Below, piece by piece: positions 8,938 through 58,760 of a stretch of DNA of 64,000 nucleotides (positions are counted from its first letter, which is position 1; every line of letters begins with the position of its first letter). A program made the translations under genes and the position numbers. The DNA is taken from the sequence record LR756504.1; one strand, written 5' to 3'. The notes beneath the pieces were generated by a model. The model was not told the DNA's origin and did not search any database. It was given only the letters and a program-made list of their open reading frames with translations.

Positions 8938-10809
8938 ATGAAGTATATTAAGAATTTTAGTGATAAACTTTTTGAGAATCTTATTTTAGAAAAAGAACTT
9001 ATCATAAGTGATAAATTAAAAGATATTCTTAAGAAAATGAGGCATCCATTTGCATCATTAATATTATCTAAGCTTGGTGAAGATTTAGTTGATAGTTCAT
9101 ATATAGATATTGACAAAGAACCTGGTATGATTAATTATATTCCTTATAATAAAGAAATTGACTTCCATACTAAGAAAGAGTTAACTGAGCCTGATAAGTG
9201 GATTAAAAGTAGAACTAAACAGCCTATAGCTAGAGTTATTAAACCAATATTATCAAAGTTGAATATAATATTCAACGAATCAGATATTGAAAAATTTGTA
9301 AATGAATATAAGTCATTACAGAAACCATCTAAATTTATTTTAGCCGAAGGTAAAGATATAATTAAATATTATTCAGAAAGAAACTATTCACATGATAATG
9401 AAGAAAGTTCGAGTTTAACACATAGTTGTATGAGATATGATGATGCTGGAAAATATCTTTCAGTATACGTAAATAATCCAAATGTAAAATTAGTTGTAAT
9501 GCTTGATGAATATAATAAAGTTTCTGGTAGAGCAGTATTGTGGTTAAATGCAACAGCAAATGACAAACCGTGTATTTTTATGGATAGAATCTATACCGCT
9601 AAACAAGCATATGAAGAATCATTTAAAAATTATGCTATAAGTAATAATTGGTGGTTTAAAGTTTATCAAAGAGCATCTGATGATGATATAACTAATGGTA
9701 AAGATTCGATAATTAATGCAAAAATTAGAGTTGTTATACCAAATGATGATTGGAATCATATTAAAAAACCATATATGGACACACTTCCATATTTAAAAGA
9801 GGAGTTTGTAAATAATAAATTTGCATATACATTAAGTAATTTTGCAGGAAATACTGATTGGAAAGAAATGTGGACAAATCAAGACGGTGCTTGTACAAAA
9901 AGTACTAATTATGAAAGTTCTGAAATGGAAATGAATCTAATTTCATCTGAATTAGAATTAGATATTTCTAAATTAGTGCCACAAAAATCAAAAGGTGTGT
10001 ATCAATACGGAAATGCTAAATATTGGATAACTCCTTTAGAAAATGCTAAGAAAAGATGTGTAACTAAATTAATGAAAGATGATAATTGGAAAAGATTTGC
10101 TACTGTTAAAACTTTATCAAAAAGATATGACTATTTAATAAGAAATCAAGTTAGTGAAAAAGTTAAGGATGATATAAAAGAGTCACCAGAAAAATATATT
10201 AAATTATTATATGATACTTTAACTCCTTTTTATTGGGTGAGTAGTTTAACATCAAATATTGTAGATGGTGATAAAAAGGAATTCCTTTCTATTATATTAG
10301 AAGGTTTATTAGTAAATAAAACTATTTATAATAAATTTATAAATTTAATGCATTCTGAATTATATACATTTTATAATTTTGGTGAAATCATTGATAATTT
10401 AAAAGAATTTTCAAAAGAAAATGTAACTAAAATTGTAGACTTATATAATGGACATGATACAAAAAGATTGAGACAATTTATAATTGATAAATTTGAGAAC
10501 AAAAATAAGCCAGATAATAAATTTAATAAATTTGTTGTTGAAACTTTACCGAGAGAGCAATTAATAGCTGAATTAGATGATACTCTTTTCATTGAATATA
10601 ATTATATTCAAATTGCTAAAATAAATTCTGAATTTTTTGATGAAGAGAAATTTATGCAAGATGTTTATAAAGATGTTAAAAATTCTAAATATAGTTTAAA
10701 ATGGACATGTGAACTTTTAGCAAGATTTGAAGAAATTAGAGCAAATGTTATATCTACTGATGGTGTTGAGATTATTATTTCAGGAAAATGTATTTACAGA
10801 ATAAAATAA
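8938..10809 (+). CDS. SCMR-domain family protein, paralogue 1 (with N-terminal leader)
   Basis: SCMRY...GRAVLW...FMDRIY...WWFK...KPYMDT; leader MKYIKNFSDKLFENLILE. Confidence 0.8.
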   Translation: MKYIKNFSDKLFENLILEKELIISDKLKDILKKMRHPFASLILSKLGEDLVDSSYIDIDKEPGMINYIPYNKEIDFHTKKELTEPDKWIKSRTKQPIARVIKPILSKLNIIFNESDIEKFVNEYKSLQKPSKFILAEGKDIIKYYSERNYSHDNEESSSLTHSCMRYDDAGKYLSVYVNNPNVKLVVMLDEYNKVSGRAVLWLNATANDKPCIFMDRIYTAKQAYEESFKNYAISNNWWFKVYQRASDDDITNGKDSIINAKIRVVIPNDDWNHIKKPYMDTLPYLKEEFVNNKFAYTLSNFAGNTDWKEMWTNQDGACTKSTNYESSEMEMNLISSELELDISKLVPQKSKGVYQYGNAKYWITPLENAKKRCVTKLMKDDNWKRFATVKTLSKRYDYLIRNQVSEKVKDDIKESPEKYIKLLYDTLTPFYWVSSLTSNIVDGDKKEFLSIILEGLLVNKTIYNKFINLMHSELYTFYNFGEIIDNLKEFSKENVTKIVDLYNGHDTKRLRQFIIDKFENKNKPDNKFNKFVVETLPREQLIAELDDTLFIEYNYIQIAKINSEFFDEEKFMQDVYKDVKNSKYSLKWTCELLARFEEIRANVISTDGVEIIISGKCIYRIK

Positions 10810-10810
10810 C

Positions 10811-10819
10811 TAATATATA
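10811..10819 (+). promoter_or_regulatory. putative late promoter TAATATATA
   Basis: Between paralogues 1 and 2, 21 nt upstream of ATG 10841. Confidence 0.5.
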
Positions 10820-10840
10820 GTGAGTAAAACTTAAAAGATT

Positions 10841-12874
10841 ATGAACGAATTAATTCAATTAATTAACATTTTAAATGGACTTGTAGAAGAAAAAGAAATC
10901 GTTCTTGGTCCAACTCTTATCAAAAAATTAAAGGCTATGGATAGCCCTATTGCAAAATTCATTTTAGATTGTGCTGTTGAAAAACTTGACTTAGACGTCG
11001 ATTATTCATTTGTTGAATTTGATGAACAAGATGCAATGGTATCTCTTCTTAAAAATAGATGGGAGGATGAAGTCGGCAAAGATATATTCACTTCAAAAAG
11101 AAGAGAAAAGATGAAAATAAGCCGTTTAATTATGGCTTTAACTGTTAAGAAAGGTATTAAATTTCCAGAAAAAGAAATTGAAGAATTTGTTAATCAATAT
11201 AAATCTTCACAAAAGAAATTTGAATTTAGAGAAATAGAAGGTAGAGAAATAAAAGAATGGTATAATGAAAGAAATTATACTAATGATAGGGATGGGAATC
11301 CGTCTCTACACAATTCTTGTATGAGATTAGCAGAGACACAAAGCTACTTTACTGTTTATATGGAAAGCCCCAATGTTAGATTATTAGCATTGATTGATAA
11401 TGACACAAATAAATTAATGGGTAGAGCTATTGTATGGAAAAATGCACATATGGATGGTGTTGGTGAAGTAACTTATATGGATAGAGTTTATACCGCTAAA
11501 CAAGCATATGAAAATTTATTTAAAGATTATGCTAAATCTAAAGGTTGGTGGTTTAGAGTAGTTCAAACAAATCAAGATATGACAATTACAAATGGTACTG
11601 AAAAAAAATCAAACTGGATAATTGATTGTCAAATTGCGGATTTAGATTGGTCGCGTTATAATAAACCTTATATGGATTCATTAAAATATATGACATATAT
11701 GAGAAAGAATGGAAGATATGTTCCTGTAATGACAAATAATTCAAATAACTATAAAGAATTGTGGCAATCAACATCAGGTTCGGGTACAACAAATAATAAT
11801 TATGTCAGTGAGCACGAAAGACTACTATCAGTAGCTAGAGCTTTAGGTATTGATCAAGCATCATTAAAAGTATCCGATAATGATGAAAAAATAATAGTGC
11901 GTGATGATGGTGTTGATTTTGCATCATATTCTATGCAAGAATTGCAATTAGTTGGTGCTATAAAATTTATAGAAAAAGATAAAATAAGAGACATCGATCC
12001 TGCCAATTATATAAACATTATTCCTAATCGTGAAATTTGGGAAAAACTTAGTGAAATGTCGGTTGATGTTATAGTAGATAAATTAGTAGAATTTGAAAAA
12101 TATATTAATAAACAAAATGGTGTTAATTTATTAATTGATATTAGTACAGATGAAGAAATTCTTAGACAATTCAAATATTATTTAAATAAAAGATATGATG
12201 ATGTACTTCATTATTTAATGAAAAATGCTAAACCAAATTTAGAAAGATTTGTAGAATCTGCATCGAAATCAAAAGTAAATAAGAAAAAAATAGTTAAAGA
12301 AAGTATAGATGATGATAACGATGAAGATGATGTTAAAAATGATACTAAAGGTGTGATACAAAAAGGTGATATAAATGAGCCAGTATCATTAGATAACTTA
12401 TTAAAACAAACAGAAGTTAATATTCAACATATGGTGGACTTTTATGAAAAAAGTAAAGCTAACAAAGATGTATGTATATCATTTTTAAAACATAAAATTG
12501 CTCGTTTAAAAATAAGATTTTTCTTGAAGAAATTTGGTAAAGATGATGATAAAAGAAAACGTTTGGTTATAGAACAAGTTATACCAGCATTATCAAACAG
12601 TATGCAACCATTAGAGTTTGTAAAAAATTATCTTAAAATTTCTAATAAAGAATTCTTCAAAATAATTAGTGAAAATTTAAATAGAAATATTATTGAAAGA
12701 GTTGCAATGAACACTCTTCAAAATAATCCTGACGTTAGAAAAGAACTATTATCTATCGATAATAGAGAATTGAGAAGTGGTAATTACTATATCTATAAAG
12801 TTAAAGATGATGATAAAAAGGAAGGTGATGTGGAAATTAAGAAACGAGGACCAGGCAGACCCAGAAAAAAATAA
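10841..12874 (+). CDS. SCMR-domain family protein, paralogue 2 (leader plus C-terminal AT-hook)
   Basis: SCMRL...GRAIVW...YMDRVY...WWFR...KPYMDS; ends KKRGPGRPRKK. Confidence 0.8.
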   Translation: MNELIQLINILNGLVEEKEIVLGPTLIKKLKAMDSPIAKFILDCAVEKLDLDVDYSFVEFDEQDAMVSLLKNRWEDEVGKDIFTSKRREKMKISRLIMALTVKKGIKFPEKEIEEFVNQYKSSQKKFEFREIEGREIKEWYNERNYTNDRDGNPSLHNSCMRLAETQSYFTVYMESPNVRLLALIDNDTNKLMGRAIVWKNAHMDGVGEVTYMDRVYTAKQAYENLFKDYAKSKGWWFRVVQTNQDMTITNGTEKKSNWIIDCQIADLDWSRYNKPYMDSLKYMTYMRKNGRYVPVMTNNSNNYKELWQSTSGSGTTNNNYVSEHERLLSVARALGIDQASLKVSDNDEKIIVRDDGVDFASYSMQELQLVGAIKFIEKDKIRDIDPANYINIIPNREIWEKLSEMSVDVIVDKLVEFEKYINKQNGVNLLIDISTDEEILRQFKYYLNKRYDDVLHYLMKNAKPNLERFVESASKSKVNKKKIVKESIDDDNDEDDVKNDTKGVIQKGDINEPVSLDNLLKQTEVNIQHMVDFYEKSKANKDVCISFLKHKIARLKIRFFLKKFGKDDDKRKRLVIEQVIPALSNSMQPLEFVKNYLKISNKEFFKIISENLNRNIIERVAMNTLQNNPDVRKELLSIDNRELRSGNYYIYKVKDDDKKEGDVEIKKRGPGRPRKK

Positions 12875-12927
12875 AGTAATAAAAAAGCCCTTTAAAATTT
12901 TAAAGGGCTTTTTTATTACTTTATTTT
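12868..12927. terminator. 60-bp perfect palindrome / bidirectional terminator
   Basis: aaaataaagtaataaaaaagccctttaaaa|ttttaaagggcttttttattactttatttt between convergent paralogues. Confidence 0.85.
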
Positions 12928-14736
12928 GTATATGTAATGTCTGAGAATATTGTGTTCTCGCTCATCAATTGATAGTAATTTTTTTCTTTGCACATCTTTA
13001 ATTTGATTTTCAATCAAATCTACTAAATTAATATATCTCTCTATTTTTTTATATTTATCTGTTGTAAATGATTTTTCAATAAAATCTAATACATCAATAC
13101 ATAATGATGAATTTACCAACATATCAATAATATTAGAATCAGTATAATCATCTAAAGATATTTCACTAAAAAATCTTTGTTTTATTTCGGTAGTACCATA
13201 TTCTTCTAAAAACATTCCAACTACTTCATATAAAGCTTTTCTTGAATTAGTATTATCATTATCATAACCATATTCAATAATTTTACAATTTAATTCATTA
13301 AACTCATTAAGCTGAGTCCAACTACTAAATAGGTATGGTGCAGATGTTACAACTTGTGAAAAACCAAATTGTGAATGTTGAAATTTATCAGTAAGTCTTC
13401 TATAATAATCTCTATTTGTTATAAATGGTCTGACTAAATTTAAAAATTCTTCTCTGCTTAATTTTGTGAAAATTCTTACGTAGTTATTTTTATCTTTCTT
13501 TAAAGTTGACCAAAATTTATCCTTATTTTCACGAACATATTTAATTAATTCATTTTTATAATTTCTGTAAAAGTCACTACTTAAATTTGGAAACTTTAAC
13601 TGAAATTTTACAATATTTTCAAATGGATTTTTTAAAAATATACTTTTTACAGAATAATTTAATTCATCACCGCTATTAAAAATTTGGTATGATTCTTCAC
13701 CAATTGAATATGTATTATTATCAATTTTTATAAAATCATTAATATTTTTGTTAAGTACTTGTGCAAGAGAAAATGGTTTATCCAATGGATGTGAATAACT
13801 ATGATTAATAACAACATTACTTTGGTGATCACCAAAGCTTTGTCTATGTGCAAGAGTATCGTTATTATTTGTTAAAAATAATCCATATGTACCATCACTC
13901 TTAGGTAAAAATTTCATTAGTCTTAGTGAATCAACATAAGGACTTTTAACATTATAATTATAGTTAACATCTGTTCTAATTTCGGCTATTAAAAGTGGTT
14001 TTAATTGTTGTGTTATACCATTGGTTATTTCTGGATTTTCATTACCTTGTCTTATTTTAAACCACCATCCTCTTGCTGTAGCATACTGTTTGAATTTTTC
14101 AACAATTGAATCATTGATAGAATAAATTCTATCCATATAAGTTCCAACAGCACCATTAATTAGAATGCCATTCCAAATTAACGCTCTTCCTTCAACTTTT
14201 CCATCATCATTTAATAATGCAAGAACACCAACAACTTGTGAATTTTCCGTATATAAAGTGAACCATTCTTGACATTTATCAAATCTCATACAAGAATTCA
14301 ATAGAGAACACCCAGATGATGAATATGATGAGTTTTTATTATATGTACTTTCATTGTAATATTTACCAAAGTCTTTACCGTGAGATAATATAAAATTACC
14401 ATTATCTCTAGCACATCTATATTTATTTACAAATATTTCAATTTCGGCATCTGTAAATTCAATATTTTTACTTTGTAATATTGATCTTACGACTCTACCG
14501 ATTTTAACACTTGTTCTAACTTTAACTTTCCATTTTTCTTCCTCTGATAATCCATCTTCTTTATTTATGGGAAGATAGCTGAATATTGTAGTATCTGTTT
14601 CGGAATCAATGTAGCTAAATTTTAAATCCAATACATCTTCTTTGGAATTCAAATCCAATAAAATAATAGAAATTTTATCATTAATACGTCTCAAAGTAGA
14701 AATTAATGAATTTCCTAAAATAATTTTCTTACTCAT
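12916..14736 (-). CDS. SCMR-domain family protein, paralogue 3 (leaderless; start likely 14736, MSKKIILG)
   Basis: SCMRF...GRALIW...YMDRIY...WWFK...SPYVDS; start chosen by alignment with paralogue 4. Confidence 0.8.
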   Translation of the reverse strand: MSKKIILGNSLISTLRRINDKISIILLDLNSKEDVLDLKFSYIDSETDTTIFSYLPINKEDGLSEEEKWKVKVRTSVKIGRVVRSILQSKNIEFTDAEIEIFVNKYRCARDNGNFILSHGKDFGKYYNESTYNKNSSYSSSGCSLLNSCMRFDKCQEWFTLYTENSQVVGVLALLNDDGKVEGRALIWNGILINGAVGTYMDRIYSINDSIVEKFKQYATARGWWFKIRQGNENPEITNGITQQLKPLLIAEIRTDVNYNYNVKSPYVDSLRLMKFLPKSDGTYGLFLTNNNDTLAHRQSFGDHQSNVVINHSYSHPLDKPFSLAQVLNKNINDFIKIDNNTYSIGEESYQIFNSGDELNYSVKSIFLKNPFENIVKFQLKFPNLSSDFYRNYKNELIKYVRENKDKFWSTLKKDKNNYVRIFTKLSREEFLNLVRPFITNRDYYRRLTDKFQHSQFGFSQVVTSAPYLFSSWTQLNEFNELNCKIIEYGYDNDNTNSRKALYEVVGMFLEEYGTTEIKQRFFSEISLDDYTDSNIIDMLVNSSLCIDVLDFIEKSFTTDKYKKIERYINLVDLIENQIKDVQRKKLLSIDEREHNILRHYIYKIK

Positions 14737-17062: not shown

Positions 17063-18544
17063 TTAAATTGCAACAGGTGCAGTAACTATTATAGTAGCAT
17101 CATAAATCCAGTGTGAAAATTGTTGATTTCCATCACCATCTCTACCTGCTAATCTCCATTTATATGTTCTACCATTTTTAACAAGCCAATCTAAAATTTG
17201 AACATTAACATTATCAAGTAATTTATTACCATTTAAATAATTTATTAATGGTTCTGTTGCAGAATTTTTAATTAAATCAACGCCCCAATATAATTCTATT
17301 TGATTTGCAAAACCAAATGGATCTTTACCTGGTTCTGGTGAGCGAGGCCCAAACTGTTCTCTAATATTTTGTTGTCTTTCAAAATTTTGATAGCCTTTAC
17401 TAACAGTAATATTACTCCATGTTGATTGTTTAGTCGAATGATAGGCATCTAACCATTTATCGAGTGATGTAGCAACTTCATCAATTAAATATTTCTGTTC
17501 ACCATCAGGAAAAGCTTTCTGTCCATATTTACTTATAGTTAATTTATTAACATCCAATCTACCATTTTCATTACCATCAAATGGTTTTACAACTTTTTGT
17601 AGTTCTTCATTTGTAGGATTTGGTGGTAAATTGGAATTTGCTAAATTTTTAGATATGTTTGTACCTGGTACACCTTTACCTGTTTCAGCAGATGGTGGTC
17701 TTTCTTCTGCTGTATATCCTCTTGATTCTGGTGTTTTTTTATTTTCTTGATATCTAGAATTCCAAGTATCTCCTAATTGAGCTTTATCAAATTGTCTTGT
17801 TTGAGCTTTTACTTGTTTATCATCCACTACATATACATGATCTGATAAAAAAGTATCTTTTAATTTTCTATGTGTTAAGTATTCATTTAAACATTGCAAT
17901 AAACCTGGATTAGGTATTACTGGAGCACCCAAATTGCCGAGATATGGACCACCTTTACTACCCATTAAATTCTCAACTAATGAATCAAACCATTTAAGCC
18001 ATTTTTCACCAAGCATAATTCTTTCATATGCTTCATCTGTCCCTAAATATAATTTAGCATTATTATCTCTTAAATTTAGAGCCATATTTCCATCTGGATC
18101 AATATTAATGTTTGATTTTACATAATCAAACATTACACCCATTTCTATATCATGAAAATATTGATGTTTATCATCATATGTAACAGCATAGAAGTTTTTA
18201 TAAGAATCATCACTCAATGAATTTAATTTTTCTTGTAAATTAAAATTATAGTGTTCTGTACTATCATAAATAGGTTTATAATAATCACCCTCTAAAAATG
18301 TAATTCTAACTACTTTTTCTAAAGCAGGTGTAAAAAATGTATTTCCTCTACCATCTAAAGTTGGACTTGCCCACGGAATATCCTGTGTCGATATACTATT
18401 TGGTTCACCATTTTTACCATGAAATCTTTCAATTCTGGCTTTAATTCTACCCTTTTTTTTACCAGTAATACCGCTTCCATTAATATCAATAGCTTCTACT
18501 ATTGCTAAAAAACTTTTACTTAGTAGATCATCCTTATTTATCAT
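17063..18544 (-). CDS. baseplate central spike (gp5-like OB-fold) with degenerate M15 peptidase-like C-terminal domain
   Basis: N-terminal GRIKARI...IPWASP...FFTP...VRITFLEGDYYKPIY; C-terminal NGRL...SKGYQ...PGKDPFG...WLVKNG...SHWIY. Confidence 0.75.
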   Translation of the reverse strand: MINKDDLLSKSFLAIVEAIDINGSGITGKKKGRIKARIERFHGKNGEPNSISTQDIPWASPTLDGRGNTFFTPALEKVVRITFLEGDYYKPIYDSTEHYNFNLQEKLNSLSDDSYKNFYAVTYDDKHQYFHDIEMGVMFDYVKSNINIDPDGNMALNLRDNNAKLYLGTDEAYERIMLGEKWLKWFDSLVENLMGSKGGPYLGNLGAPVIPNPGLLQCLNEYLTHRKLKDTFLSDHVYVVDDKQVKAQTRQFDKAQLGDTWNSRYQENKKTPESRGYTAEERPPSAETGKGVPGTNISKNLANSNLPPNPTNEELQKVVKPFDGNENGRLDVNKLTISKYGQKAFPDGEQKYLIDEVATSLDKWLDAYHSTKQSTWSNITVSKGYQNFERQQNIREQFGPRSPEPGKDPFGFANQIELYWGVDLIKNSATEPLINYLNGNKLLDNVNVQILDWLVKNGRTYKWRLAGRDGDGNQQFSHWIYDATIIVTAPVAI

Positions 18545-21198: not shown

Positions 21199-21220
21199 AT
21201 TTTAATATATATATTAAAAT
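21199..21220. promoter_or_regulatory. 22-bp palindrome: putative bidirectional late promoter
   Basis: ATTTTAATATATATATTAAAAT carries TAATATATA on both strands between divergent genes. Confidence 0.6.
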
Positions 21221-21233
21221 GTTTCAACTTTAA

Positions 21234-22742
21234 ATGATGGAATACTTCTTTAATTATGACTATTTTAGAATAAATGAAGCTGATGATAATAAAGGGCTTA
21301 AAGCAAGTCTTAATAATAATATTGGAAATAATGTATCTAATGTAGATAATACAAAAATAGCTGATGCGCCAATAAATACTGCTGGTACAGATGGTACATC
21401 GGGTACTAATATAATTGAAAGTACTGATGAGACATCTTTAAATAATAAAATTCAAGAATGGAATACATTATATTCACAAGCATTTAAATTCCAAAACGAT
21501 ATGCCCAAAGACGTTAACTCTAAAGTTGATTTAACTAATATAGGACAAAAGAACCCTAATAATGACACTCAAATAACAGATTATAATAATAGTTTATTAG
21601 CTAAAGTAAGGGATGGTATAATTAAAATAGCAGAATTACTTACAAGTAAAAATGGTGACAGCTTTATGTTTAAAGGTAGGACAATAAATATAGTTGGACA
21701 CACAAGTTCACCAGCTAAACCAGAATATAATATAATTTTGGCAAAAAGAAGATCTGATTTTGTTATTAATGCTATAAAAAGTGCAATGAATACGATATTA
21801 AAAAATTCAGCGAAACCAGAAGATATTGTATCATTTGTTTCTGCACCTAAAGGAGAAACAGAATTAATTATCAGAAATGATACACAAAGTGGTGATGCTA
21901 TATTAAATACTAATAATAAAGAGATTGAGGGTAGCATTGATGTTAAACAATACCAAACACCAGAACAAAAGCAGGGATTGAATAGAAGGGTTGTAATAGG
22001 CTTAGATAAGTTTCCTATTAGGTATAATCAACCAGAGAAAGAAATTATTTCTAGCAGTACTGATATACCTATTATAAATCCTACGGATGTTAAATTTAAT
22101 ACCGATAGTTATATCTTAACATCAAAAAGCGATTCTATTTTAACTAATTTTGCGAATGAAATTTTAGAAGCTATTAAAAATAATAGTAATTTAACTGACA
22201 TATATATTTGTTCGCATTCACATAAAGCTAAAGAAGAAGATCCTAATGATATAATAGATCAAGAAAATAAAATATTCTACATAAGTTTAAATAGAGCGGT
22301 ATCGGTTAAAAACTTTTTACAAAACAGGGGAATAAAAATCAAATATCACTTAATTCCATGTTCATATTTAATACCTAAAGGAAATAGCGCAGACGAAAAT
22401 AAAAGAGTTGAAATATATTTCAACGAAAATAATGATGTTAAAAAAGCTAAAAATGCATTTAATCAATTATCTAAAAAATATGGTATTGAAAATAATAATG
22501 GTGAATATGATGCTGATAGAATACTTACCAATAAAGTTTTAAGAAAAGATATCATCACTAATATAATTGCTTGTATGAAAGAAGGTGTAAAAGAAAAATG
22601 GATACCTTTAGAATTATGGTATGATGAATATGGTACTAATGAAGATAATTTAAAGGCATATAAGAAAGAGTTGGAAAATACTGTATCTAAATATGGTAAA
22701 AATAAATACTCGGTAGAAGATTTTGTCTACATAAAGAGATAA
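21234..22742 (+). CDS. protein with two OmpA-like peptidoglycan-binding domains
   Basis: IVGHTS...YNIILAKRRSDFV...KGE...LNRRVVI and a degenerate VKFNTDSYIL...ISLNRAVSVKNFL...NKRVEI. Confidence 0.75.
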   Translation: MMEYFFNYDYFRINEADDNKGLKASLNNNIGNNVSNVDNTKIADAPINTAGTDGTSGTNIIESTDETSLNNKIQEWNTLYSQAFKFQNDMPKDVNSKVDLTNIGQKNPNNDTQITDYNNSLLAKVRDGIIKIAELLTSKNGDSFMFKGRTINIVGHTSSPAKPEYNIILAKRRSDFVINAIKSAMNTILKNSAKPEDIVSFVSAPKGETELIIRNDTQSGDAILNTNNKEIEGSIDVKQYQTPEQKQGLNRRVVIGLDKFPIRYNQPEKEIISSSTDIPIINPTDVKFNTDSYILTSKSDSILTNFANEILEAIKNNSNLTDIYICSHSHKAKEEDPNDIIDQENKIFYISLNRAVSVKNFLQNRGIKIKYHLIPCSYLIPKGNSADENKRVEIYFNENNDVKKAKNAFNQLSKKYGIENNNGEYDADRILTNKVLRKDIITNIIACMKEGVKEKWIPLELWYDEYGTNEDNLKAYKKELENTVSKYGKNKYSVEDFVYIKR

Positions 22743-39952: not shown

Positions 39953-40083
39953 TTTAATAAAAGATTTTTATCAACTTTATACAAGATCATGATATATATT
40001 AATAATATTATATGTTTTATTATTATTATTATTTTGTGGAATAGTATATTTATAGATATATAATTAAAAAAAGTAATTGATAT

Positions 40084-49000: not shown

Positions 49001-52000
49001 CAGCCAAAATATATTTAGTACTAGATTGATTAACATCTTGTGGATCATTTATTAATTCAATCCATACATTCAGTGCTGTTGCTGAACCAACTTTATTAAA
49101 GAAATCTAATGTTAATGTATAATCTTGATTAGCTAATAATTTAACATTAATTGATTTAATATCAGATGATGGAACACCGATTATAGTTTGTCTAAAAAAG
49201 CTTCTTTCACCTTCTGGTTCATTTAAAATGAAATTTTCATAATTTAGATTATCTGTGTAATGTCTTTCTAAATTAAATTTAGGCGCATCTTGAATTCTTA
49301 AATAATCTTTTATACCATCATAAAGAACTGTATAGCCAGCAATACCAGGATATACATTAGATTCAACTTCAACTTTTCTTGATTGGTAATAGAAGCCTGG
49401 TTCCCAGTTAGAAGAAAATAAATATCTTGAGTCAAATTCATAACCATATTCATCAACCATCGGATAAATACTTTTTCCGTTACCGCTATCTATTTTAAGA
49501 ATATTACTTTCAGTATTACATTTAGAAAAAATCAATTCATTAATAGAACCAAAATTAACTACATTTGGAGATTCTGTTGAACTTGATGGATCATAGAATT
49601 TCCAATTACCACTTTCTTTAATACTTGGTACACCATTAGTTAATTTCGTTAATTCGATATAACCCATCGGTCTAAATAATGGAACTGTTCTAAATATAGG
49701 AACATAAGGACCTGAATATCTAAATACTGATGGATCTAAATCATTATCCAATTCCCATGTTTGTCTATTATCTTTACCATCCACAATTTCTTTAGCAATA
49801 GGATAATAGTTATATGAGTTTACATCCAATAAACTTCCCACTCTGAATCCATCGGATGTAAAATTCACATTATTAGTAGGACTATCGGTATCGTCGTCTA
49901 ATACAATTCTATTTTTAAATGTATTATTTATATCTATGTCAACATTAATGGGATTTACACTAAATGCATTTTGCTTTATAATTGTTTCTTCTGGTAATTT
50001 ATACTTAATTATAACATCTGTTGTTTCGTATGTCATTGGATTTGAAATTGTGCCATCGTTATAAATATGAATATATTTTGTATCGTCTTTACCTTCTGGT
50101 GGATTATAGTTAAAATTATTTAAATTAAATAAAAATGTTTGTAGCATAAAATCACGAGGTCTTGATACAACAGAACTATTTACCTTAAATCCAGTATTAT
50201 CCCATTTAATAGGACTTACTTCTTCTCTTTCTATGTTATCATTATACCAAACATCTATTTCACATGTTTCAGCGTTTATAGCAGTACCGCTCGTTCCATC
50301 AGTTAATTGACTAATTTGAATAGTTTCTTCAGTGTCAACATAAAGATGTATCAGAACATTTTTCCAATAATCATTTACATAAATATCAACTCCACTATTA
50401 TTATTACCACTACCATTTAGCTTTCTTCCAAAAACTATAGCGAATTTATAATCTTCATAATTTATATTCACTTTAGTTATAATATCATCAATGAGTGTTG
50501 AATTACTTTCCTCATCACTAAATTTAATTTTATCTACATCGAATATTGTATACTTAACACCTCTAAATATTGTATAAGGATCATTAAATTCATTTGCTGA
50601 TATAAATGTTGAATATTTAGTTGTTAGTTCTAAACCATCAATTGTTTCTTGATCTGATTTGAATATGTATTCGAAATAATCGTAATCAGTTGAAACGTAT
50701 TTTGATAAATCGAAAAAAGGTTCTTTTAAATGTAAAGAATAAAATTTATAATCTTTAGCATTATTTAAACCAAAACGATAAAAATAATCTAAATCTAAAT
50801 TACTTCTTATAGGAAAATTATTTCCAGTAAATATACTGGGTTCTCTATTAAAGATACCAGCCATATCTAAACTATAATTCAATCTATATGGATAGTCATG
50901 TAAACCTTGACTATTTAAAAATCCCCATTTACATATTGATTGATTTTTTCTCCAAATTTCTGTCAGATCATTTTGATTTATTTCCCATAATTCATCAGAA
51001 GAAATATATTCAGAAGAAACTGGAATATAATTAGTATCAACCGATTTATTAGGATCTTGTTTAGATTTAATTAATGAAGATTTAATTTTAGCGTCACTTA
51101 TTTCTCCTTTACCATCTAATCCCCAAGTAAGAACATCTTCTAAATTTGCTGGATCTGAATTTGATTTAAAATCGAATTCGTAAGTTTTCAAGTTATCATC
51201 AACTCTCCAAACATATTGTTCTTCTCTATAATATCTTCTTTTTAATGATACTTGTCTATCTGTAACACCACCCCAATTAGTACCATCAATAGTTCCAGAA
51301 AATAATGACCAACTCGAATCATACTCTCTTCTAAATAATTCAAAATCCTCATATGGTTTTTGTGTAAATGGATTTATTTCACCTATTTGATCTCTTATGG
51401 TATATGGTCTATTATTTAAATCTGTGATAGGAATTCTTCTCGCTCTGTCATTAGTACCAATTAAAGAACGAACTTTTACTATAATATCTCTATATTCTGT
51501 TGCATATAATTTAGGTTCTAATGAATTATTTAATTCAAACTTCTTTTCATATTCAAAATTAGCATAATCAGTTTCAACTCTATCAAAATCAAAATCTTTT
51601 ATGTCTGTGAAATTTATTCTTAAAATATCAAAATATGGGGGTATTGAATCGGATTTAGTTGATTCTATATTTACTCTTTTGTAATAAGCAGGATTTTTAT
51701 TTATATAACCATTATTTATCCAAGATACAATATCTCTATCATTAACATTTATTGACCAGTCTGTTTGTATGTAATATTTACCTTTTAAATTTGGATTTGT
51801 ATTTGGGTATTGTTTAACAACATGATAATTATTATCAATATTAATTAAAAATAAGTCAGCATTATTAAAGTTGGGAATTGTGAAATCATTTGAAAAACTT
51901 AACGTATTTATTCTAAATAATAATGTAGGAATTCCATCAACTAAAACAGTATCAAATAATCTTTGATATGATGTAAATAATGGATTTACACTTTGAATAA

Positions 52001-53387
52001 TATTAGTTCCTAAAGTATTATTAATTTTTTGTGAATTTACTACTATTTTATGTTTACCTGTTGTAAGTTCATTTATTAAAATTTTCTTAAATTGTGATAA
52101 TGTTTTATCATCTATTGTATTTGTTGTAAAGAATTCATTATTTTCATCTGACATTAATTCGCCGTCAACAATTCTTTGAACGATTGTAGAAGTTGTAGTT
52201 TTGGTAATTTTTAATTTATGTTCAATGATAATATCAGATACCACTCTATAAATGAAATCACCTATAATACCATCAAGTTTAAAAACATCCTTATCTGGAT
52301 TTTCAATTCTTTCAATTCTATAAAATTTACCTTTCCATTCTACCCAATAAGTAAGAGTATCTTTCCATCCTTTTTTAATAGGATTAAATGAATATAATCT
52401 ACCTTTAGCTTCTCTTACAAATTTATTATCTTTCAAAAATGGTATTTCACTAACTTCAATGGCTGATAAATCTTTAAGAGTCTCTTCAGTAACTTTACTT
52501 AATTCTGATGCTTGATATGGTGATACTGTTTTAACAGTTGGTTTATCATCTACATAAAATCCAATATAGCGATTTATCGACCACTTTCTTAAAGATGTAG
52601 GTGTAGCAGGAGTATCATCGAATAAAAATTTCATATTAATTATGTGTGGATATACTAAATTATTGTCCTGCCATAACTGTGTGAAATATTCTTCTGTCTT
52701 GAATATTGGTGTGTTTTTACTTTGAACATCTTTTAAACTTAAATACTTTTTTACCCATCCACCATTAATGGTGTCTATGCCAGAAATTTCTGATAAATCG
52801 TCACCATGATTTACAAATAAAGGGAATTTAGGATAATCTTCATCAGATATAAAATTTCTTTTAATCCACACGCCTAAATCAGTATTCTCAGTTAAATCAT
52901 ACATGGAAACAAATTTCCAATTATCAATAATCTGACTTCTAAAATTAGATGCATCCGAGTCTTGATTTAATGAACCTGATCCATCAACACGTAATATTAT
53001 AAAATTCTTAGGTAAAGCATTATTTTTTATGTATAGAGGAGCTAAATATTCATACTCTTCATTATAATAAGTATCTTCTGTAAAGAAAGCACCCGAATGA
53101 TAAGTATCATCAAATTGATGTCTATAATCATCATATACTTCCGATGTATCATTATCAAATTTAACATCAAAAACAGTTTTACTTTCAATATCTTGAAAAA
53201 AATATGGTATTACTTCTTTCCAATATTCTTCTTTTTTTATTTCAACATGTTGTAGTCTTTGTTGTCCTAAAGTCTTATTAATAGCAAAGCTTTCTAAAAA
53301 CAATTTGTAATCAGAACTCACTACTAATTTGATGTTACCTGTTAAAGCTGGATTAGTACGTACTAAAAAGAAGCTCCTATCTATCAT
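46011..53387 (-). CDS. giant virion structural protein (2458 aa) with C-terminal LamG-like domain
   Basis: ITIEFWVR...WHHVACV...IYIDG...GGLDELRYWNYVRS...LVAYYRFDEG; TTATATATA at 53412-53420. Confidence 0.7.
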   Translation of the reverse strand: MIDRSFFLVRTNPALTGNIKLVVSSDYKLFLESFAINKTLGQQRLQHVEIKKEEYWKEVIPYFFQDIESKTVFDVKFDNDTSEVYDDYRHQFDDTYHSGAFFTEDTYYNEEYEYLAPLYIKNNALPKNFIILRVDGSGSLNQDSDASNFRSQIIDNWKFVSMYDLTENTDLGVWIKRNFISDEDYPKFPLFVNHGDDLSEISGIDTINGGWVKKYLSLKDVQSKNTPIFKTEEYFTQLWQDNNLVYPHIINMKFLFDDTPATPTSLRKWSINRYIGFYVDDKPTVKTVSPYQASELSKVTEETLKDLSAIEVSEIPFLKDNKFVREAKGRLYSFNPIKKGWKDTLTYWVEWKGKFYRIERIENPDKDVFKLDGIIGDFIYRVVSDIIIEHKLKITKTTTSTIVQRIVDGELMSDENNEFFTTNTIDDKTLSQFKKILINELTTGKHKIVVNSQKINNTLGTNIIQSVNPLFTSYQRLFDTVLVDGIPTLLFRINTLSFSNDFTIPNFNNADLFLINIDNNYHVVKQYPNTNPNLKGKYYIQTDWSINVNDRDIVSWINNGYINKNPAYYKRVNIESTKSDSIPPYFDILRINFTDIKDFDFDRVETDYANFEYEKKFELNNSLEPKLYATEYRDIIVKVRSLIGTNDRARRIPITDLNNRPYTIRDQIGEINPFTQKPYEDFELFRREYDSSWSLFSGTIDGTNWGGVTDRQVSLKRRYYREEQYVWRVDDNLKTYEFDFKSNSDPANLEDVLTWGLDGKGEISDAKIKSSLIKSKQDPNKSVDTNYIPVSSEYISSDELWEINQNDLTEIWRKNQSICKWGFLNSQGLHDYPYRLNYSLDMAGIFNREPSIFTGNNFPIRSNLDLDYFYRFGLNNAKDYKFYSLHLKEPFFDLSKYVSTDYDYFEYIFKSDQETIDGLELTTKYSTFISANEFNDPYTIFRGVKYTIFDVDKIKFSDEESNSTLIDDIITKVNINYEDYKFAIVFGRKLNGSGNNNSGVDIYVNDYWKNVLIHLYVDTEETIQISQLTDGTSGTAINAETCEIDVWYNDNIEREEVSPIKWDNTGFKVNSSVVSRPRDFMLQTFLFNLNNFNYNPPEGKDDTKYIHIYNDGTISNPMTYETTDVIIKYKLPEETIIKQNAFSVNPINVDIDINNTFKNRIVLDDDTDSPTNNVNFTSDGFRVGSLLDVNSYNYYPIAKEIVDGKDNRQTWELDNDLDPSVFRYSGPYVPIFRTVPLFRPMGYIELTKLTNGVPSIKESGNWKFYDPSSSTESPNVVNFGSINELIFSKCNTESNILKIDSGNGKSIYPMVDEYGYEFDSRYLFSSNWEPGFYYQSRKVEVESNVYPGIAGYTVLYDGIKDYLRIQDAPKFNLERHYTDNLNYENFILNEPEGERSFFRQTIIGVPSSDIKSINVKLLANQDYTLTLDFFNKVGSATALNVWIELINDPQDVNQSSTKYILAANYQTITPNGTSTTNSFKTYKYTPTLTYSGNNLLSYNGSSGSNLENYYVYGNIINAKINFKLVNGTGTIDIYPMKLQLSSVVDNFLDINVGATNGTGGIIYENDLIGTWGGYIKKDTEVGDVHTFPFRLIGREKYSTFPTLVSNIKSSSAIIGGITKTTSDLLSRGFIVDAGSNGTYLTNKTGPYLRISHTEPFSFEPERWTNILDGNSIVYVGQTINLGDSNLNPEWTLKWFTNIKSPKTYINTIKLHAFEPEINRRKNGLFKNISQRVKLPFIPGVINTKIKQKYFFEPKPFIPPQSNILQLLEKERQLKEQLRRDPFFKRPSDIKALTDLEAKIAAENAKNKLLTNPTHIQPLGKVLFVPGLNFQPIPIPSPQQLISNIHESLINSKSINETIEFNIVPDNGDKISVIVNSRHPDDNSALDMTQIIGLINNVITPNYEAIEVDTSSPIFGNIFKGNFKSFKIISRNPGSYYNFIIEIKSSHLSTVGIPVIANIESTISEKHNKTSLKNADIRTTGYMADITIEFWVRIDGWTKDYETILYKGEDTSDDPWTNNTFNNFTFIIGKNGKDDKLAFRTCHRKLNGQYEKHNLISTTDISDGAWHHVACVVDTFTSLKSIYIDGSLDAKINDFLSESYTKPSEKELVALFIENRKRFYPKSENISKFPDFQTLASKIRNDLQDNKTLYWLDSIRGYRELDYWDKQLQEKELGITIDDAYREFQDNFTSLDYYLNVDINNSWSLLIGTDSTIALGRRTFKGGLDELRYWNYVRSGEQINTNYTFILRPESYLDPLKSLVAYYRFDEGKGSSTLKDLMGGKMIADMSRWARIKTSFSNDGFKENEKDEVAYFHFESAYFPASDIQVNVDSLNWIVSDANIVGFSDERYVSTPPPPSTKESIVIEQKPTFKKNEFMLAKKSKPVTNLQTLVLNTKLPTAQYHSQTWLQKVIEQGKTSAFSAVQYIGNVKIVEPTKIIQTIAKAPSKFADVIKSLFNKRRK

Positions 53388-56176: not shown

Positions 56177-56196
56177 AAAAAAAATCTTATTAAAAT

Positions 56197-56409: not shown

Positions 56410-56468
56410 AAAACTTATATATTTTTTATTATATAGTAAAATGTTATTTTTCCCTTATAGGGAAACTA

Positions 56469-57035
56469 TTATTTGTATGAACCTATTCCATCAAATCCAC
56501 CAGATGATTTAACAGGCTTTTTGATAAAATGTTTAGACATTTTACCTAAATATACATCACAATCATTATCAAATGCTTGACAATTGCATTTTCTTGAAAA
56601 TTCTTCTACTTTAGCAACAGCATCATCATAATGAAGTCCACTACATACAACTTCGCAATCAGTATCACTTTGTTTATCAATACCTAATCTTTCACCATTA
56701 TTTGTCATACATTTAATAATACACCAATCAGCTTTAGGTGTAGTAGAGAAATTGTCATTTGGATTAAATCCAGTAGAAACTGGTAAGTCGACTTCTGGTT
56801 TTGGACAAATTGCTATTACGCCATCTTCCATAGCATCAATTTCTTCTTCTTTAGATGCATCACCTGTTTTAACTTTTACTTCAATTTCCAATGAATCTTC
56901 AACATTTTCAGCTTCGACATCATTTTCTACACCATATTCCAATTTATCTTCAATATCTTTAATGGTTTCTTCTTCATTTTCATTTAGATAACCATTTTTA
57001 TAATTCTCGTATGTTTTTAAATATTTACTTTTCAT
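56469..57035 (-). CDS. acidic hypothetical protein with capsid-targeting-like leader
   Basis: MKSKYLKTYENYKNGYLNE; TAATATATA at 57059-57067. Confidence 0.7.
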   Translation of the reverse strand: MKSKYLKTYENYKNGYLNENEEETIKDIEDKLEYGVENDVEAENVEDSLEIEVKVKTGDASKEEEIDAMEDGVIAICPKPEVDLPVSTGFNPNDNFSTTPKADWCIIKCMTNNGERLGIDKQSDTDCEVVCSGLHYDDAVAKVEEFSRKCNCQAFDNDCDVYLGKMSKHFIKKPVKSSGGFDGIGSYK

Positions 57036-57122
57036 ATGAAAAAGTCTATGTTTTTCTGTATATATTAAAAATTATACTCATATTTCTAAACTTTGCTTAT
57101 AAAATAATTATTATTATAATAA

Positions 57123-57154
57123 GTTGGAATTATGCTATTAAATACTTAACTTTG
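57123..57154 (+). promoter_or_regulatory. Bacteroidota-type promoter (near consensus)
   Basis: GTTG-N20-TAACTTTG upstream of the sigma gene. Confidence 0.55.
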
Positions 57155-57175
57155 TATTATAGTTAATAAATAATT

Positions 57176-57718
57176 ATGAAAGAGGCGGACAAAAATAACG
57201 AGAGTGTAGTAACTTTATCTGTTAAAGAAATGACTGATAAGTTCATGGGCGTAAGAGGTGTGCTTTTTAGACATATTATGTTTAAATTCTATCTTAATAG
57301 AGATGATGCTGATGATTTACTTCAAGATGTATATTATAAAATGTTAAATAATATACACAAATTCAAATCTGATACAAATTTCAAAGCATGGGCTTATACA
57401 ATTACGTCAAGATTGTTTATTGATAAGTATAGAGTTAGCAAAAAAAACCAATGTGTTGACGTGGAAGATGATACATTAGAATTAATGTTAAAATCTGATA
57501 GAAATGGGAGCGATTCGTTATTCTTAATACAGGATATTAAGAAAGCTATTGCCGCTATTAAGAATCCAAGAGATAAACGATTAGCTGAAATGTACTACGA
57601 TGGCTTTAAATACGAAGAGATGGTAGATGAATTAAAAGTACCTATGGGTACTATCAAAGGTAGGTTACATAATGTTAAAGCGTATTTGGCCAAAGAATTA
57701 GCAATGTATAATGTATAA
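57176..57718 (+). CDS. ECF-type RNA polymerase sigma-70 factor
   Basis: Region 2 DADDLLQDVYYK...FKAWAYTI; region 4 GFKYEEMVDELKVPMGTIKGRLHN. Confidence 0.9.
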   Translation: MKEADKNNESVVTLSVKEMTDKFMGVRGVLFRHIMFKFYLNRDDADDLLQDVYYKMLNNIHKFKSDTNFKAWAYTITSRLFIDKYRVSKKNQCVDVEDDTLELMLKSDRNGSDSLFLIQDIKKAIAAIKNPRDKRLAEMYYDGFKYEEMVDELKVPMGTIKGRLHNVKAYLAKELAMYNV

Positions 57719-57720
57719 AA

Positions 57721-57752
57721 TAAAGGGAGATTTAATCTCCCTTTATTTTTTT
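57721..57752 (+). terminator. rho-independent terminator
   Basis: AAAGGGAGA-tttaa-TCTCCCTTT plus T-run. Confidence 0.75.
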
Positions 57753-57766
57753 AATATAAAAATTAA

Positions 57767-58075
57767 ATGAAAATAATATTATCTATACCTGTTTATATTA
57801 ATATTATTCCTAAAGGAGTTAATTATTATAAAAATATTGATATTGAATGTACTTTTATTAAAAGAAAATATAACAATTTTAAATTGAATAAAGATGATTT
57901 AATTTCTAAATTGGGTGTATTTTTTTCGGATTCACATAATCAAAAAATAAACATTAATTGTTCTACTTGCTTTACTTTGGAGTCGGGTATTAATTTAGAA
58001 GATTATCCAAACTTCATTATATTAGAAAGGACTTTAAAAAGTCATAGAGATATTATTATAGAATCTCTTCTATAG
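57767..58075 (+). CDS. hypothetical protein
   Basis: 102-aa ORF. Confidence 0.45.
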   Translation: MKIILSIPVYINIIPKGVNYYKNIDIECTFIKRKYNNFKLNKDDLISKLGVFFSDSHNQKININCSTCFTLESGINLEDYPNFIILERTLKSHRDIIIESLL

Positions 58076-58760
58076 CATTTTCAACTTTAATTGATTCGTA
58101 TTCTACATTAGGAAATTTGGAAGCCATCATTTTATCTACGGCTTTTATAGTTTTTCTATTATCATCATAAAAATATACTTTAGTTGGATTATATTCAAAT
58201 ATTAATTGCGATATAACATCCGATTTCCATTTAGGTGTTGTTCCTGAATTACCTGGATATGTAAATAAGCCTCTATTTGGTAATTCTAAATTAAATTTAG
58301 TCAAACAATCTTTAACTTTATCTTCCATTCTAAAACTTCTTGCTGTAATTATAGCTTTATTTTTAGCCATTTTGTATATATGTGCAATTTCGGGATTTAC
58401 TTCAGTTGGTAAACTAATATCGGATAAGCTAAATTGTGTAGGACTTGTCATATAGATTCTACTACCTTTAACCACCCAATTTTTTACATTAGGTGTTATT
58501 TGGAAGCGTTGTTCATTGAGTACGTATATTCTACCATTTTCATGTTTTAAATCGTTTACAGAAGCTCCTATTTCATTTAAACAAATATTTAATAATGATG
58601 AAAGAGTGTGTCCTTCATTTAAAGTTTGAATAATCAAATCATTAAAGTATGGAGACCTTACAAGGGTATCATCGAAGTCAAAAATATAGAGTTCTTCTAT
58701 TTTATGCGATGCATTTTCAGCAGAAAAATTTTCAAATGTTTTAATGTGTTTACTTCCCAT
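58056..58760 (-). CDS. HAD-superfamily phosphatase (Swiss-Army-Knife RNA-repair-like) with capsid-targeting-like leader
   Basis: FDFDDTLVRSP, IITAR, YFYDDN; N-terminus MGSKHIKTFENF; TAATATATA at 58766-58774. Confidence 0.8.
   Translation of the reverse strand: MGSKHIKTFENFSAENASHKIEELYIFDFDDTLVRSPYFNDLIIQTLNEGHTLSSLLNICLNEIGASVNDLKHENGRIYVLNEQRFQITPNVKNWVVKGSRIYMTSPTQFSLSDISLPTEVNPEIAHIYKMAKNKAIITARSFRMEDKVKDCLTKFNLELPNRGLFTYPGNSGTTPKWKSDVISQLIFEYNPTKVYFYDDNRKTIKAVDKMMASKFPNVEYESIKVENAIEEIL

Follow-up and report, generated by a model that had tools for sequence, protein, structure and literature searches.

Targeting of proteins to the phage capsid by short N-terminal tags is known experimentally from T-even phages, in which the tag marks a few internal proteins, about three per genome and basic in T4, that counter host restriction. 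The T4 capsid-targeting sequence is MKTYQEFIAE (PMC8442874); it is cleaved after Glu by the gp21 prohead protease and leaves the cargo intact. In phiKZ-like giant phages, many head-internal and ejection proteins are likewise processed after Glu by gp21-related proteases (phiKZ gp175 and SPN3US gp245, MEROPS S80), and paralogous families carry shared N-termini (PMC5694885), but the propeptides are mostly longer than 100 residues, lack a common short consensus, and are cut at S/A/G-x-E. Protease-scaffold fusions or nested genes, such as lambda C/Nu3 and the "prohead core scaffolding protein and protease" of Tenacibaculum phage PTm1, place an N-terminal protease before a helical scaffold region and are encoded between the portal and capsid genes. 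By analogy of function only, the cargo-loading peptides of encapsulins direct diverse enzymes into an HK97-fold shell, although these peptides are usually C-terminal, bind the shell itself and are not cleaved; this comparison was not tested here.

Here we examined a 64,000-nt stretch (the window) of LR756504.1, a 636-kb uncultured megaphage, in which a sequence-only reading had identified a recurrent T4-like capsid-targeting leader on unrelated proteins, placed the four strongest cases in transcription units headed by a common motif, and predicted an injected cargo set consisting of an SCMR protein, a HAD phosphatase and two unknowns. The observation holds, and is much stronger than could be seen from the window. 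All six N-termini are where they had been placed: MKYIKNFSDKLFENLILE at 8938(+), MKYLKTYEGF at 39722(-), MKSKYLKTYENYKNGYLNE at 57035(-), MGSKHIKTFENF at 58760(-), MMEYFFNYDYFRINE at 21234(+) and MKTYDE at 27942(+). Lack of enrichment at N-termini relative to internal positions had been put forward in advance as grounds for abandoning the idea, and the opposite was found. Using the pattern [KR][YHF][LIVM]K.[YFW][EDS].[FYWL] over all six frames, 12 of 12 matches in a 348-kb fragment of the genome and 18 of 19 in the full 636-kb genome lie within 6 residues of an ORF-initial Met, although only 5.2% of eligible positions are of that kind (binomial p = 1.2e-22); 18 of 19 matches to the K-[YH]-[LI]-K-x-[FY]-E-x-[FY] text in the full genome sit 1-3 residues after an ORF's first Met. 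A PSSM built without the Met column finds 39 N-terminal sites at 12 bits or more and only a handful of internal ones. Chance or AT-rich composition was rejected on these positional statistics and on reversed-pattern controls, which gave 0-1 hits against 10-22 real hits. Codes 4 and 15 add little ORF coverage over code 11, so code 11 was kept, and the run of N at window positions 4978-4998 was left masked without reference to the matching stretch of LR756504.

About 60 of 904 proteins (6.6%) carry the leader, rather than the four to six originally listed, and they are otherwise unrelated: after 16 residues were trimmed, 51 leader proteins fall into 49 BLAST clusters. The full form is MK[YH][IL]KxFExF[IL]NE, and in this genome it is mostly the shorter MKYLKxFE[DN][FY] followed by an acidic linker. 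Synonymous codon use in the leader equals genome-wide use (for example, AAA 77% against 85% and TTT 77% against 78%), so the peptide is what is selected. None of the 60 leader proteins has a hydrophobic stretch of 14 or more residues within the first 45, against 49 of the other proteins, and the leader does not qualify as a Sec/Tat or lipoprotein signal.

Within the window, three of the four strong cases score 23-25 bits. The 354-aa ORF of unknown function at 38658-39722(-) has a strong leader (codons 39693-39722; 23.2 bits) and is the second gene of its unit. The 188-aa acidic ORF at 56469-57035(-) has a leader (56979-57035; 24.3 bits) ending in Y-L-N-E, a gp21-type [LI]-x-E site. In the 234-aa HAD-like protein at 58056-58760(-), the leader (58725-58760; 25.1 bits) is followed by a variable acidic linker and a DxDxT motif at residues 28-32, and orthologues at 41-46% identity keep MK[WY][IL]K[LF]FE[DN]F. 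Assignment of this protein to the HAD superfamily is moderately supported: D28, D30 and T32 are invariant and T139, K179 and D200 are conserved in 10 homologues, and the best Foldseek hits of an AF2 model, in which residues 1-18 have pLDDT below 50 while the core reaches 86-94, are HAD domains; yet TM is only 0.40-0.56 and Pfam HAD_2 scores E 0.07 or worse, which leaves membership undecided. The fourth case, a 623-aa ORF at 8938-10809(+), has a weak leader (8938-8991; 10.6 bits). Its designation as an SCMR protein has no support, since Pfam finds nothing on it, or on the other three main cases, and it belongs to a viral family of at least 14 paralogues of unknown function, three of them in the window at 10841-12874(+), 12916-14736(-) and 58828-60999(-); a protein atlas gave only viral hypothetical clusters and a weak GNAT-like structural hint on which we do not rely. 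Of the two weaker cases, the 502-aa ORF at 21234-22742(+) carries an OmpA-type peptidoglycan-associating domain (44.6 bits), no signal peptide, and a degenerate leader that keeps F-R-I-N-E, whereas the 85-aa ORF at 27942-28199(+) has a low PSSM score and no ATATATA promoter, is not supported as a member, and is probably a coincidence.

The proposed link to a promoter also holds. Leader genes lie behind the AATATATA promoter that precedes the capsid, portal, sheath and baseplate genes. Exact TAATATATA occurs at 7161-7169(+), heading the unit 7190-8935 plus 8938-10809; at 39993-40001(-), heading the two-gene unit from 39952 to 38658; at 57059-57067(-), 23 nt upstream of the ATG at 57035 (long-spacing class); at 21203-21211(+); and at 58766-58774(-), 5 nt upstream of the ATG at 58760, a short-spacing class that implies a leaderless or near-leaderless mRNA. 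A G+C-rich, terminator-like hairpin followed by a T-run at 58796-58816(-), read from the sequence without a consensus scan, lies between the gene ending at 58828 and the promoter of the HAD-like gene and marks the latter as its own transcription unit. Genome-wide, 26 of 34 leader genes have ATATATA within 60 nt upstream, against 151 of 870 other genes (odds ratio 15, p = 3e-13). The motif also precedes a DnaB-like helicase gene and is therefore not strictly a structural-gene promoter.

A T4-type head module is present at LR756504 positions 183-191 kb, outside both the window and the 348-kb fragment, in which a search for the T4 gp21 family found nothing. In the order portal, protease-scaffold, capsid protein, it comprises a Portal_T4 match of 221.5 bits, a prohead protease at 185342-187480(-), and a Gp23 match of 91.7 bits whose N-terminus has K-W-S-P-I-L-E, like T4 K-W-K-P-L-L-E. 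The protease matches phrog_207 at 2e-32 and scores 23.6 bits against Peptidase_S80 (cut-off 23.4) and 22.4 bits against S77 (below its cut-off of 27); hhalign of the protease family against T4 gp21 gives 95.9% probability, with the catalytic His and Ser motifs aligned (GELDHP to GELNHP and ISSRAAG to VSSRGLG). A sequence search of the PDB with the protease-scaffold returned nothing at E up to 1. The protease is fused to a scaffold domain built from a regular 14-residue repeat (Y-S-E-Y-[ILV]-A-E-x-L-D-x-x-I-x), each copy carrying a putative cleavage site.

The last seven residues of the full leader, [FY]xx[FY][LI]xE, have the same pattern as YQEFIAE of the T4 tag and as the unit present in 11 copies at exact 14-residue spacing in this scaffold. 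In LR756504, 11 of 90 heptad sites are scaffold repeats and 27 of the other 79 lie in the first 20 residues of proteins (p = 1.7e-9); in the 735-kb LR756501, 14 are in the scaffold and 56 of the other 105 are N-terminal (p = 1.6e-31). For [FYW]xx[FYW][LIV]NE, 15 of 20 sites lie in the first 25 residues (p = 1e-10), and the protease-scaffold protein itself carries five LNE/VNE sites. The leader is not an exact copy of a repeat, since the repeat has Ala where the leader has Asn at P2. Likeness to MKTYQEFIAE extends to the initial M-K and the terminal heptad, but the stretch is too short for a statistical homology test and the leader has a three-residue insertion ([IL]-K-x) relative to T4. A similar reservation applies to the cleavage site, which is present in full-form leaders and in three of the four strong window cases (YLNE; IEE before the HAD core; LFE/ILE), whereas MKYLKTYEGF at 39722 has no clear site and many class-A leaders have T or K rather than L/I at the P3 position of the F-E site, so a canonical [LI]-x-E is not always found.

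The leader is a trait of a whole clade of jumbo and megaphages. In about 46 non-redundant related jumbo phages, a roughly 115-aa acidic gene between portal and protease-scaffold, the slot of T4 gp67/gp68, always begins MK.[IV]K[TL][FY]E.F. BLAST of this class-B head-module protein, and of two leader-like genes next to the portal or capsid gene in megaphage relatives, found no homologue in LR756504 or LR756501. The leader is common in viral contigs, with more than 116 and more than 120 stretches in IMG/VR (both lower bounds), against 9 in 596 Gb of prokaryote genomes, and it is kept in relatives with 20-43% G+C. The same protease-scaffold occurs in 14 of 25 and 19 of 26 large leader-bearing contigs, and in 3 of 3 near-complete ones in the second set. 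The cultured phages PTm1 and PAU have no match to the leader pattern, and PTm1 has a different scaffold repeat and no N-terminal heptads. Lak-A1, which was not followed up, and LR756501 have no match to the 8-residue core, although LR756501 uses a variant prefix, MIKK[FY], with the same heptad. A homologous enzyme in Maribacter phage Molly_1 lacks the leader, so the leader is an add-on module.

We propose that the recurrent N-terminus is a capsid-targeting propeptide of the T4 kind, an explanation we consider the best available and somewhat more likely than not; the sequence-only interpretation is thus supported in part, its core idea having gained evidence while the size of the set, the SCMR assignment and the MKTYDE case required correction. 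The pattern of hydrophobic residues (positions 4, 7, 10 and 11) is that of an amphipathic helix, as read from the sequence, since the one structure model left the leader unmodelled. In this view, proteins made from the AATATATA (late-type) promoters would use the leader to join the assembling scaffold core as a pseudo-repeat, the shell of Gp23-type capsid protein would close around the core, and the protease would cut after the Glu of [LIV]-x-E in scaffold repeats and leaders alike. Scaffold fragments and leaders would then leave while the cargo stays inside with the DNA, and cargo with peptidoglycan-binding or lytic domains (PG_binding_1, SLT and OmpA are represented) and no secretion signal would act when ejected into the next host. 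Our data establish the motif and its position, selection at the peptide level, the association with the promoter, the T4-type head genes, the shared heptad, and the presence of the leader on a conserved head-module gene; scaffold binding, cleavage, retention in the capsid and injection are inferences. There are no virion proteomics, N-terminomics or cultured members to draw on, so encapsidation and cleavage are unobserved, whether the tag is necessary and sufficient for encapsidation was not assayed, and a predicted complex between the first 40 residues of a leader protein of G047, a complete 256-kb relative, and its 604-aa protease-scaffold scored 0.00, which is no evidence either way. Other features sit less easily with the proposal. 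The cargo set is very large (6-10% of genes) and two thirds of it is acidic, unlike the internal proteins of T4; some cargo in relatives looks like cytoplasmic enzymes (NMNAT-like, 2H phosphoesterase, and one primase-like ORF); and T4 gp67 and gp68 themselves lack the T4 targeting sequence.

Several alternatives deserve consideration. The one we take most seriously, although we regard it as doubtful, is that the leader is an amphipathic helix with a role unrelated to the capsid, such as a degron or protease-recognition tag that times protein lifetime, a membrane or compartment targeting helix, or an oligomerisation handle, and that its likeness to the scaffold repeat reflects convergence of helix-forming sequences. 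The K-aromatic-aliphatic-K-aliphatic start resembles published N-terminal ClpX recognition motifs, a similarity not tested here, and both the cytoplasmic-looking enzymes and the lack of structure in the AF2 model are compatible with such a role. This would not explain, however, why the heptad is otherwise concentrated in the head scaffold at exact periodicity, why the leader co-occurs with that scaffold type and is absent from PTm1, why a conserved head-operon gene always carries it, or why it is nearly absent from cellular genomes. It is also possible, but unlikely, that the leader does bind the scaffold core while the tagged proteins are transient core or assembly components that, like T4 gp22, gp67 and gp68, are degraded or expelled at maturation. 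The only leader protein with a positional link to the head is the small acidic gene in the gp67/gp68 slot, and many leader proteins are small and acidic like gp67, but folded enzymes and peptidoglycan-binding or lytic domains (HAD-like, HD, SLT, PG_binding_1, OmpA) make little sense as disposable scaffold parts, and in T4 the same kind of tag leaves the cargo intact (PMC8442874).

Two further readings, at the level of nucleic acid, appear very unlikely. An initiation-region element needed for translation of leaderless or short-leader late transcripts in a host without Shine-Dalgarno use would fit the 20 of 51 leader genes with the promoter only 3-7 nt from the ATG, and the almost exclusively A/T codons of the leader. 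Synonymous codons nevertheless vary while the residues are fixed, about 40 short-spacing genes have quite different N-termini, and the leader persists across a wide range of base composition. Alternatively, a mobile promoter-plus-start cassette, like the PeSL cassettes of T4-type phages, could have been copied in front of many genes without the peptide having a function, since promoter and leader travel together and leader genes cluster in some genome regions. Only the ATATATA core is shared, however, and neither the DNA between promoter and ATG nor the codons are conserved as such a cassette would require, whereas the peptide is kept by the HAD-like orthologues and across hundreds of divergent contigs. 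Purifying selection on the leader, which would argue against a functionless by-product, is already indicated; shuffling may explain how the leader spread but not why it is maintained.

Compared with the T4 system, the tag described here is likewise an N-terminal sequence of 10-13 residues in a phage with a homologous protease, portal and major capsid protein, and its genes are co-regulated with the head genes. It differs in residing on about 60 to more than 100 proteins per genome, in a mostly acidic cargo that includes enzymes, in the fusion of protease to scaffold, and in matching the scaffold's own repeat, which is not the case for T4 gp22. It differs from the phiKZ and SPN3US propeptides in being short and nearly invariant and in having [LI]-x-E, where a site is present, as its putative cleavage site. 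Full-text searches of the literature collection examined found neither the leader strings nor any paper linking capsid targeting with mega- or huge phages. A more far-reaching possibility, which we offer tentatively, is that the leader is a single copy of the scaffold repeat, so that cargo is loaded by slotting in among the roughly 11-14 tandem Y-x-E-Y-[ILV]-A-E units and the cis-linked protease then trims scaffold and leaders at the same Glu. By this route a whole clade of 250-735-kb phages, represented by at least 583 contigs in IMG/VR, would pack 60 to more than 100 different proteins, 6-10% of their proteome, into the capsid and deliver them with the DNA, including peptidoglycan-acting modules and enzymes of kinds known from counter-defence (2H phosphoesterase, NMNAT-like, HD, HAD).

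A tag resembling that of T-even phages thus marks dozens to more than a hundred proteins per genome in the largest known phages, none of which is cultured, and it probably identifies a very large set of capsid-packaged, possibly injected, proteins. The question of which core component the T4 targeting sequence recognises, which is of long standing, also becomes testable. If the tag works as proposed, mimicry of the scaffold repeat would be a concrete loading rule that could be used to load foreign proteins into large capsids. The packaged, and probably injected, protein set of uncultured megaphages could then be read from sequence alone, which would help explain what part of their very large gene content is for.

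The window has a G+C content of 25% and is identical to positions 472,061-536,060 of LR756504.1, a circular uncultured phage genome of 636,363 bp. A 348-kb record covering the same DNA (G000), classed as complete with inverted terminal repeats, proved to be a fragment of this genome that runs from LR 378,400 through the end to about 89,800. Its exact terminal inverted repeat is 123 bp and matches LR 378400 and about 89.8 kb, and the record looks like an assembly artefact, so that searches confined to it miss the head module. We therefore rebuilt the full genome from the public record, leaving out the stretch that matches the masked N run at window 4978-4998. Genetic code 11 fits, other codes add little ORF coverage, and a simple codon-usage gene caller gave 904 genes covering 90% of the genome.

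The observation made by the sequence-only reading, that a similar N-terminus recurs on unrelated proteins, holds, and all six N-termini (8938, 21234, 27942, 39722, 57035 and 58760) are where they were reported. Lack of enrichment at N-termini relative to internal positions had been set out in advance as grounds for rejecting the proposed leader, and we find the opposite. A regular expression for the core, [KR][YHF][LIVM]K.[YFW][EDS].[FYWL], applied to all six frames, matches 12 times in the 348-kb record and 19 times in the full genome, and 12 of 12 and 18 of 19 of these matches lie within a few residues of the first Met of an ORF, although only 5.2% of eligible positions are of that kind (p = 1.2e-22). 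The motif is not a by-product of AT-rich composition. A PSSM built without the Met column finds 39 N-terminal sites at 12 bits or more, and the few internal sites are mostly mis-called starts. The only strong internal copy (K-Y-L-K-T-F-E-S-F, 24.5 bits) is at residue 337 of LR756504 154616-156016(+), just after a Y-L-N-E site and before an acidic run, and looks like a fusion of two cargo modules or a lost stop and start. Of the window cases, those at 39722, 57035 and 58760 score 23-25 bits, the 8938 case is weak (10.6 bits), 21234 is a degenerate form, and 27942 is unsupported. After removal of the first 16 residues, 51 leader proteins fall into 49 BLAST clusters, so the description of the proteins as unrelated is correct. 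The codons of the leader vary synonymously at the genome-wide rate, showing that the peptide is under selection, not the RNA.

In many proteins the leader has a second half, F-[LI]-N-E at residues 10-13, and the motif [FYW]xx[FYW][LIV]NE has 15 of its 20 occurrences in the first 25 residues (p 1e-10). Two pattern scans of IMG/VR returned more than 116 and more than 120 stretches, with nearly all matches at ORF starts, in contigs of 5-483 kb and 20-43% G+C, in front of diverse proteins; the canonical form there is MKHIKLFEQFINE. In contrast, the same pattern occurs only 9 times in 596 Gb of prokaryote genomes, in each case in a metagenome-assembled genome. Taking the strong PSSM hits together with the N-terminal heptads described below, 60 of 904 proteins (6.6%) of LR756504 carry a leader; none of these has a hydrophobic N-terminal stretch, and two thirds are acidic.

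The most enriched 8-mers upstream of genes are AATATATA and its neighbours, which are about 12-fold enriched and sit at two distinct distances from the ATG, either 4-5 nt (about 60 genes, implying leaderless or near-leaderless mRNAs) or 16-25 nt (about 100 genes). Examples of the AATATATA promoter-like motif in the window lie at 58766-58774(-), 18549-18557(-) and 4684-4692(-). A second upstream motif, TAnnTTTG, is found at 124 genes genome-wide, including window 6866-7057(-), 22745-23242(-), 45252-46007(-) and 57176-57718(+), and is almost mutually exclusive with ATATATA (110 genes against 167, with 14 having both). It matches the -7 element of Bacteroidota promoters, suggesting a Bacteroidota host and an early gene class. 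ATATATA precedes the capsid, portal, tail-sheath and baseplate genes, and 26 of 34 leader genes against 151 of 870 others (odds ratio 15, p 3e-13). Since it also precedes a DnaB-like helicase gene, we call it a phage-specific late-type promoter rather than a strictly structural one. Two giant ORFs at window 29828-38563(-) and 46011-53387(-) (2911 and 2458 aa), each behind an ATATATA motif, lie near a baseplate-like gene (17063-18544, phrog_37871) and are probably tail or fibre components, although they were not analysed.

No gp21-like gene was found in the window or in the 348-kb record. The full genome, however, has at 183-191 kb a portal (Portal_T4, 221 bits), a 764-aa ORF whose likely start is Met53, and a major capsid protein (Gp23 family, 91.7 bits). 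The 764-aa protein starts with a protease domain that matches phrog_207 at 2e-32, with Pfam S80 at its cut-off and S77 just below its cut-off, and a profile of 16 homologues matches T4 gp21 at 95.9% probability with the catalytic His and Ser motifs aligned. Behind the protease lies a scaffold-like region built of a 14-residue repeat, Y-S-E-Y-[ILV]-A-E-x-L-D-x-x-I-x, plus five [LV]-N-E sites. A 612-aa ORF on the opposite strand, LR756504 187410-189248(+) (7410-9248 in locus L128), is inserted between the portal and protease genes and overlaps the long form of the protease ORF. It resembles a homing endonuclease by its content, without having been compared with any family library, and related megaphage loci also have extra DNA at this spot.

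The T4 capsid-targeting sequence is MKTYQEFIAE (PMC8442874), and T4-family proteases cut after Glu, for example at ITE-6 and LTE-619 in Alt (PMC5694885). The T4 tail YQEFIAE, the leader tails FEQFINE and FNDFLNE, and the scaffold repeat YSEYIAE all fit [FYW]xx[FYW][LIV]xE. In LR756504 this heptad occurs 90 times; eleven copies are scaffold repeats at exact 14-residue spacing, and of the other 79, 27 lie in the first 20 residues of proteins (7.5 expected, p 1.7e-9). In the 735-kb LR756501 there are 119 in all, with 14 in the scaffold and 56 of the other 105 at N-termini (p 1.6e-31), and the leader prefix is MIKK[FY] rather than MKYLK. In LR756501.1 the hexapeptide DPYGEE, often DPYGEE-x-W, also recurs at varied positions in 92 of 989 predicted proteins, often shortly after the leader. 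LR756504 has none, but seven of its leader proteins have [DE]-W-[DE]-[DE] at residues 7-12; the function is unknown, and it may be a second sorting or cleavage signal. The cultured relative Tenacibaculum phage PTm1 has a protease-scaffold with a different repeat, is counted as having no N-terminal heptads (2 of 20), and has no leader pattern either.

In the complete 256-kb relative G047 and in about 46 non-redundant relatives, the small acidic gene (about 115 aa) between the portal and the protease-scaffold always begins MK.[IV]K[TL][FY]E.F. This is the slot of the T4 core proteins gp67 and gp68, which themselves lack the T4 tag. At least 583 IMG/VR stretches encode this protease-scaffold, and among large leader-bearing contigs it is present in 14 of 25 and 19 of 26, and in 3 of 3 near-complete ones in the second set. 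In five loci of megaphage relatives (L285, L286, L297, L299 and L300), a conserved gene of about 129 aa just downstream of the capsid gene starts with a leader-like M-[IK]-K-x-[FY]-x-x-F-x-E and continues K-K-x-K-F-P-N-I; BLAST found no homologue of it in LR756504.

Most leader proteins have no known family. Those with Pfam hits include PG_binding_1 (LR 241456), SLT (LR 544908), OmpA (window 21234), HD plus a tRNA-nucleotidyltransferase domain, and a P-loop protein. The window protein 58056-58760 has an invariant DxDxT motif, and its orthologues at 41-46% identity keep the leader; in the structure model the leader is unstructured and the core resembles HAD domains, though weakly. A family of at least 14 paralogues (about 470-770 aa), represented in the window at 8938-10809(+), 10841-12874(+), 12916-14736(-) and 58828-60999(-) and at no fewer than 10 loci elsewhere in LR756504, including the ORF with the strong internal leader copy, shares an N-terminal domain of about 300 aa and has no known family. 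Some members carry the leader, some start directly at the domain, and two have N-terminal extensions of 125-165 aa, one of which starts with a leader-like FFDDFLNE. In relatives the leader sits on 2H phosphoesterase, NMNAT-like, isochorismatase-like and SET-like proteins, assignments that, except for the 2H family, are read from sequence motifs. The 2H homologue in Maribacter phage Molly_1 has no leader. In an IMG/VR contig (locus L243), a 927-aa primase-like ORF (CHC2 zinc-finger text C-P-F-H-D-D-H-N-P-S) begins MKYIKVFSRFFNE, which is either a chance match to the pattern or a replication enzyme carrying the leader, which would be awkward for the cargo model. The enzymes are less expected cargo and we count them as a caveat, whereas peptidoglycan-directed domains without any secretion signal fit delivery from the virion.

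The proposal of the sequence-only reading, a T4-like capsid-targeting leader, is partly supported by these results. We consider capsid targeting with retained cargo somewhat more likely than not. It is also possible, though unlikely, that the tagged proteins have only a transient role in the core, and a role of the helix unrelated to the capsid is doubtful but carries more weight than the transient one. We regard an RNA-level signal and functionless spread of a cassette as very unlikely. About 40 genes with the 3-7-nt promoter spacing have ordinary N-termini, which argues against the leader being a requirement of leaderless translation. The sequence comparisons establish the motif, its position and its genomic associations, whereas binding, cleavage, retention and ejection are inferences that nothing here shows, and the single complex prediction gave no answer.

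The principle is that of T4. The scale, the fixed 10-13-residue consensus across hundreds of contigs, the fusion of protease and repeat scaffold, and the match between tag and scaffold repeat are not described in the literature searched, in which, with most subscription journals outside its coverage, the leader strings gave no hits and no paper links capsid targeting with mega-, huge or jumbo phages. The simplest reading joins these facts as follows. A late-made protein with the leader would join the scaffold core, and the T4-type shell would close around it. The protease fused to the scaffold would then cut after Glu in both the repeats and the leaders, and the cargo would stay in the head.
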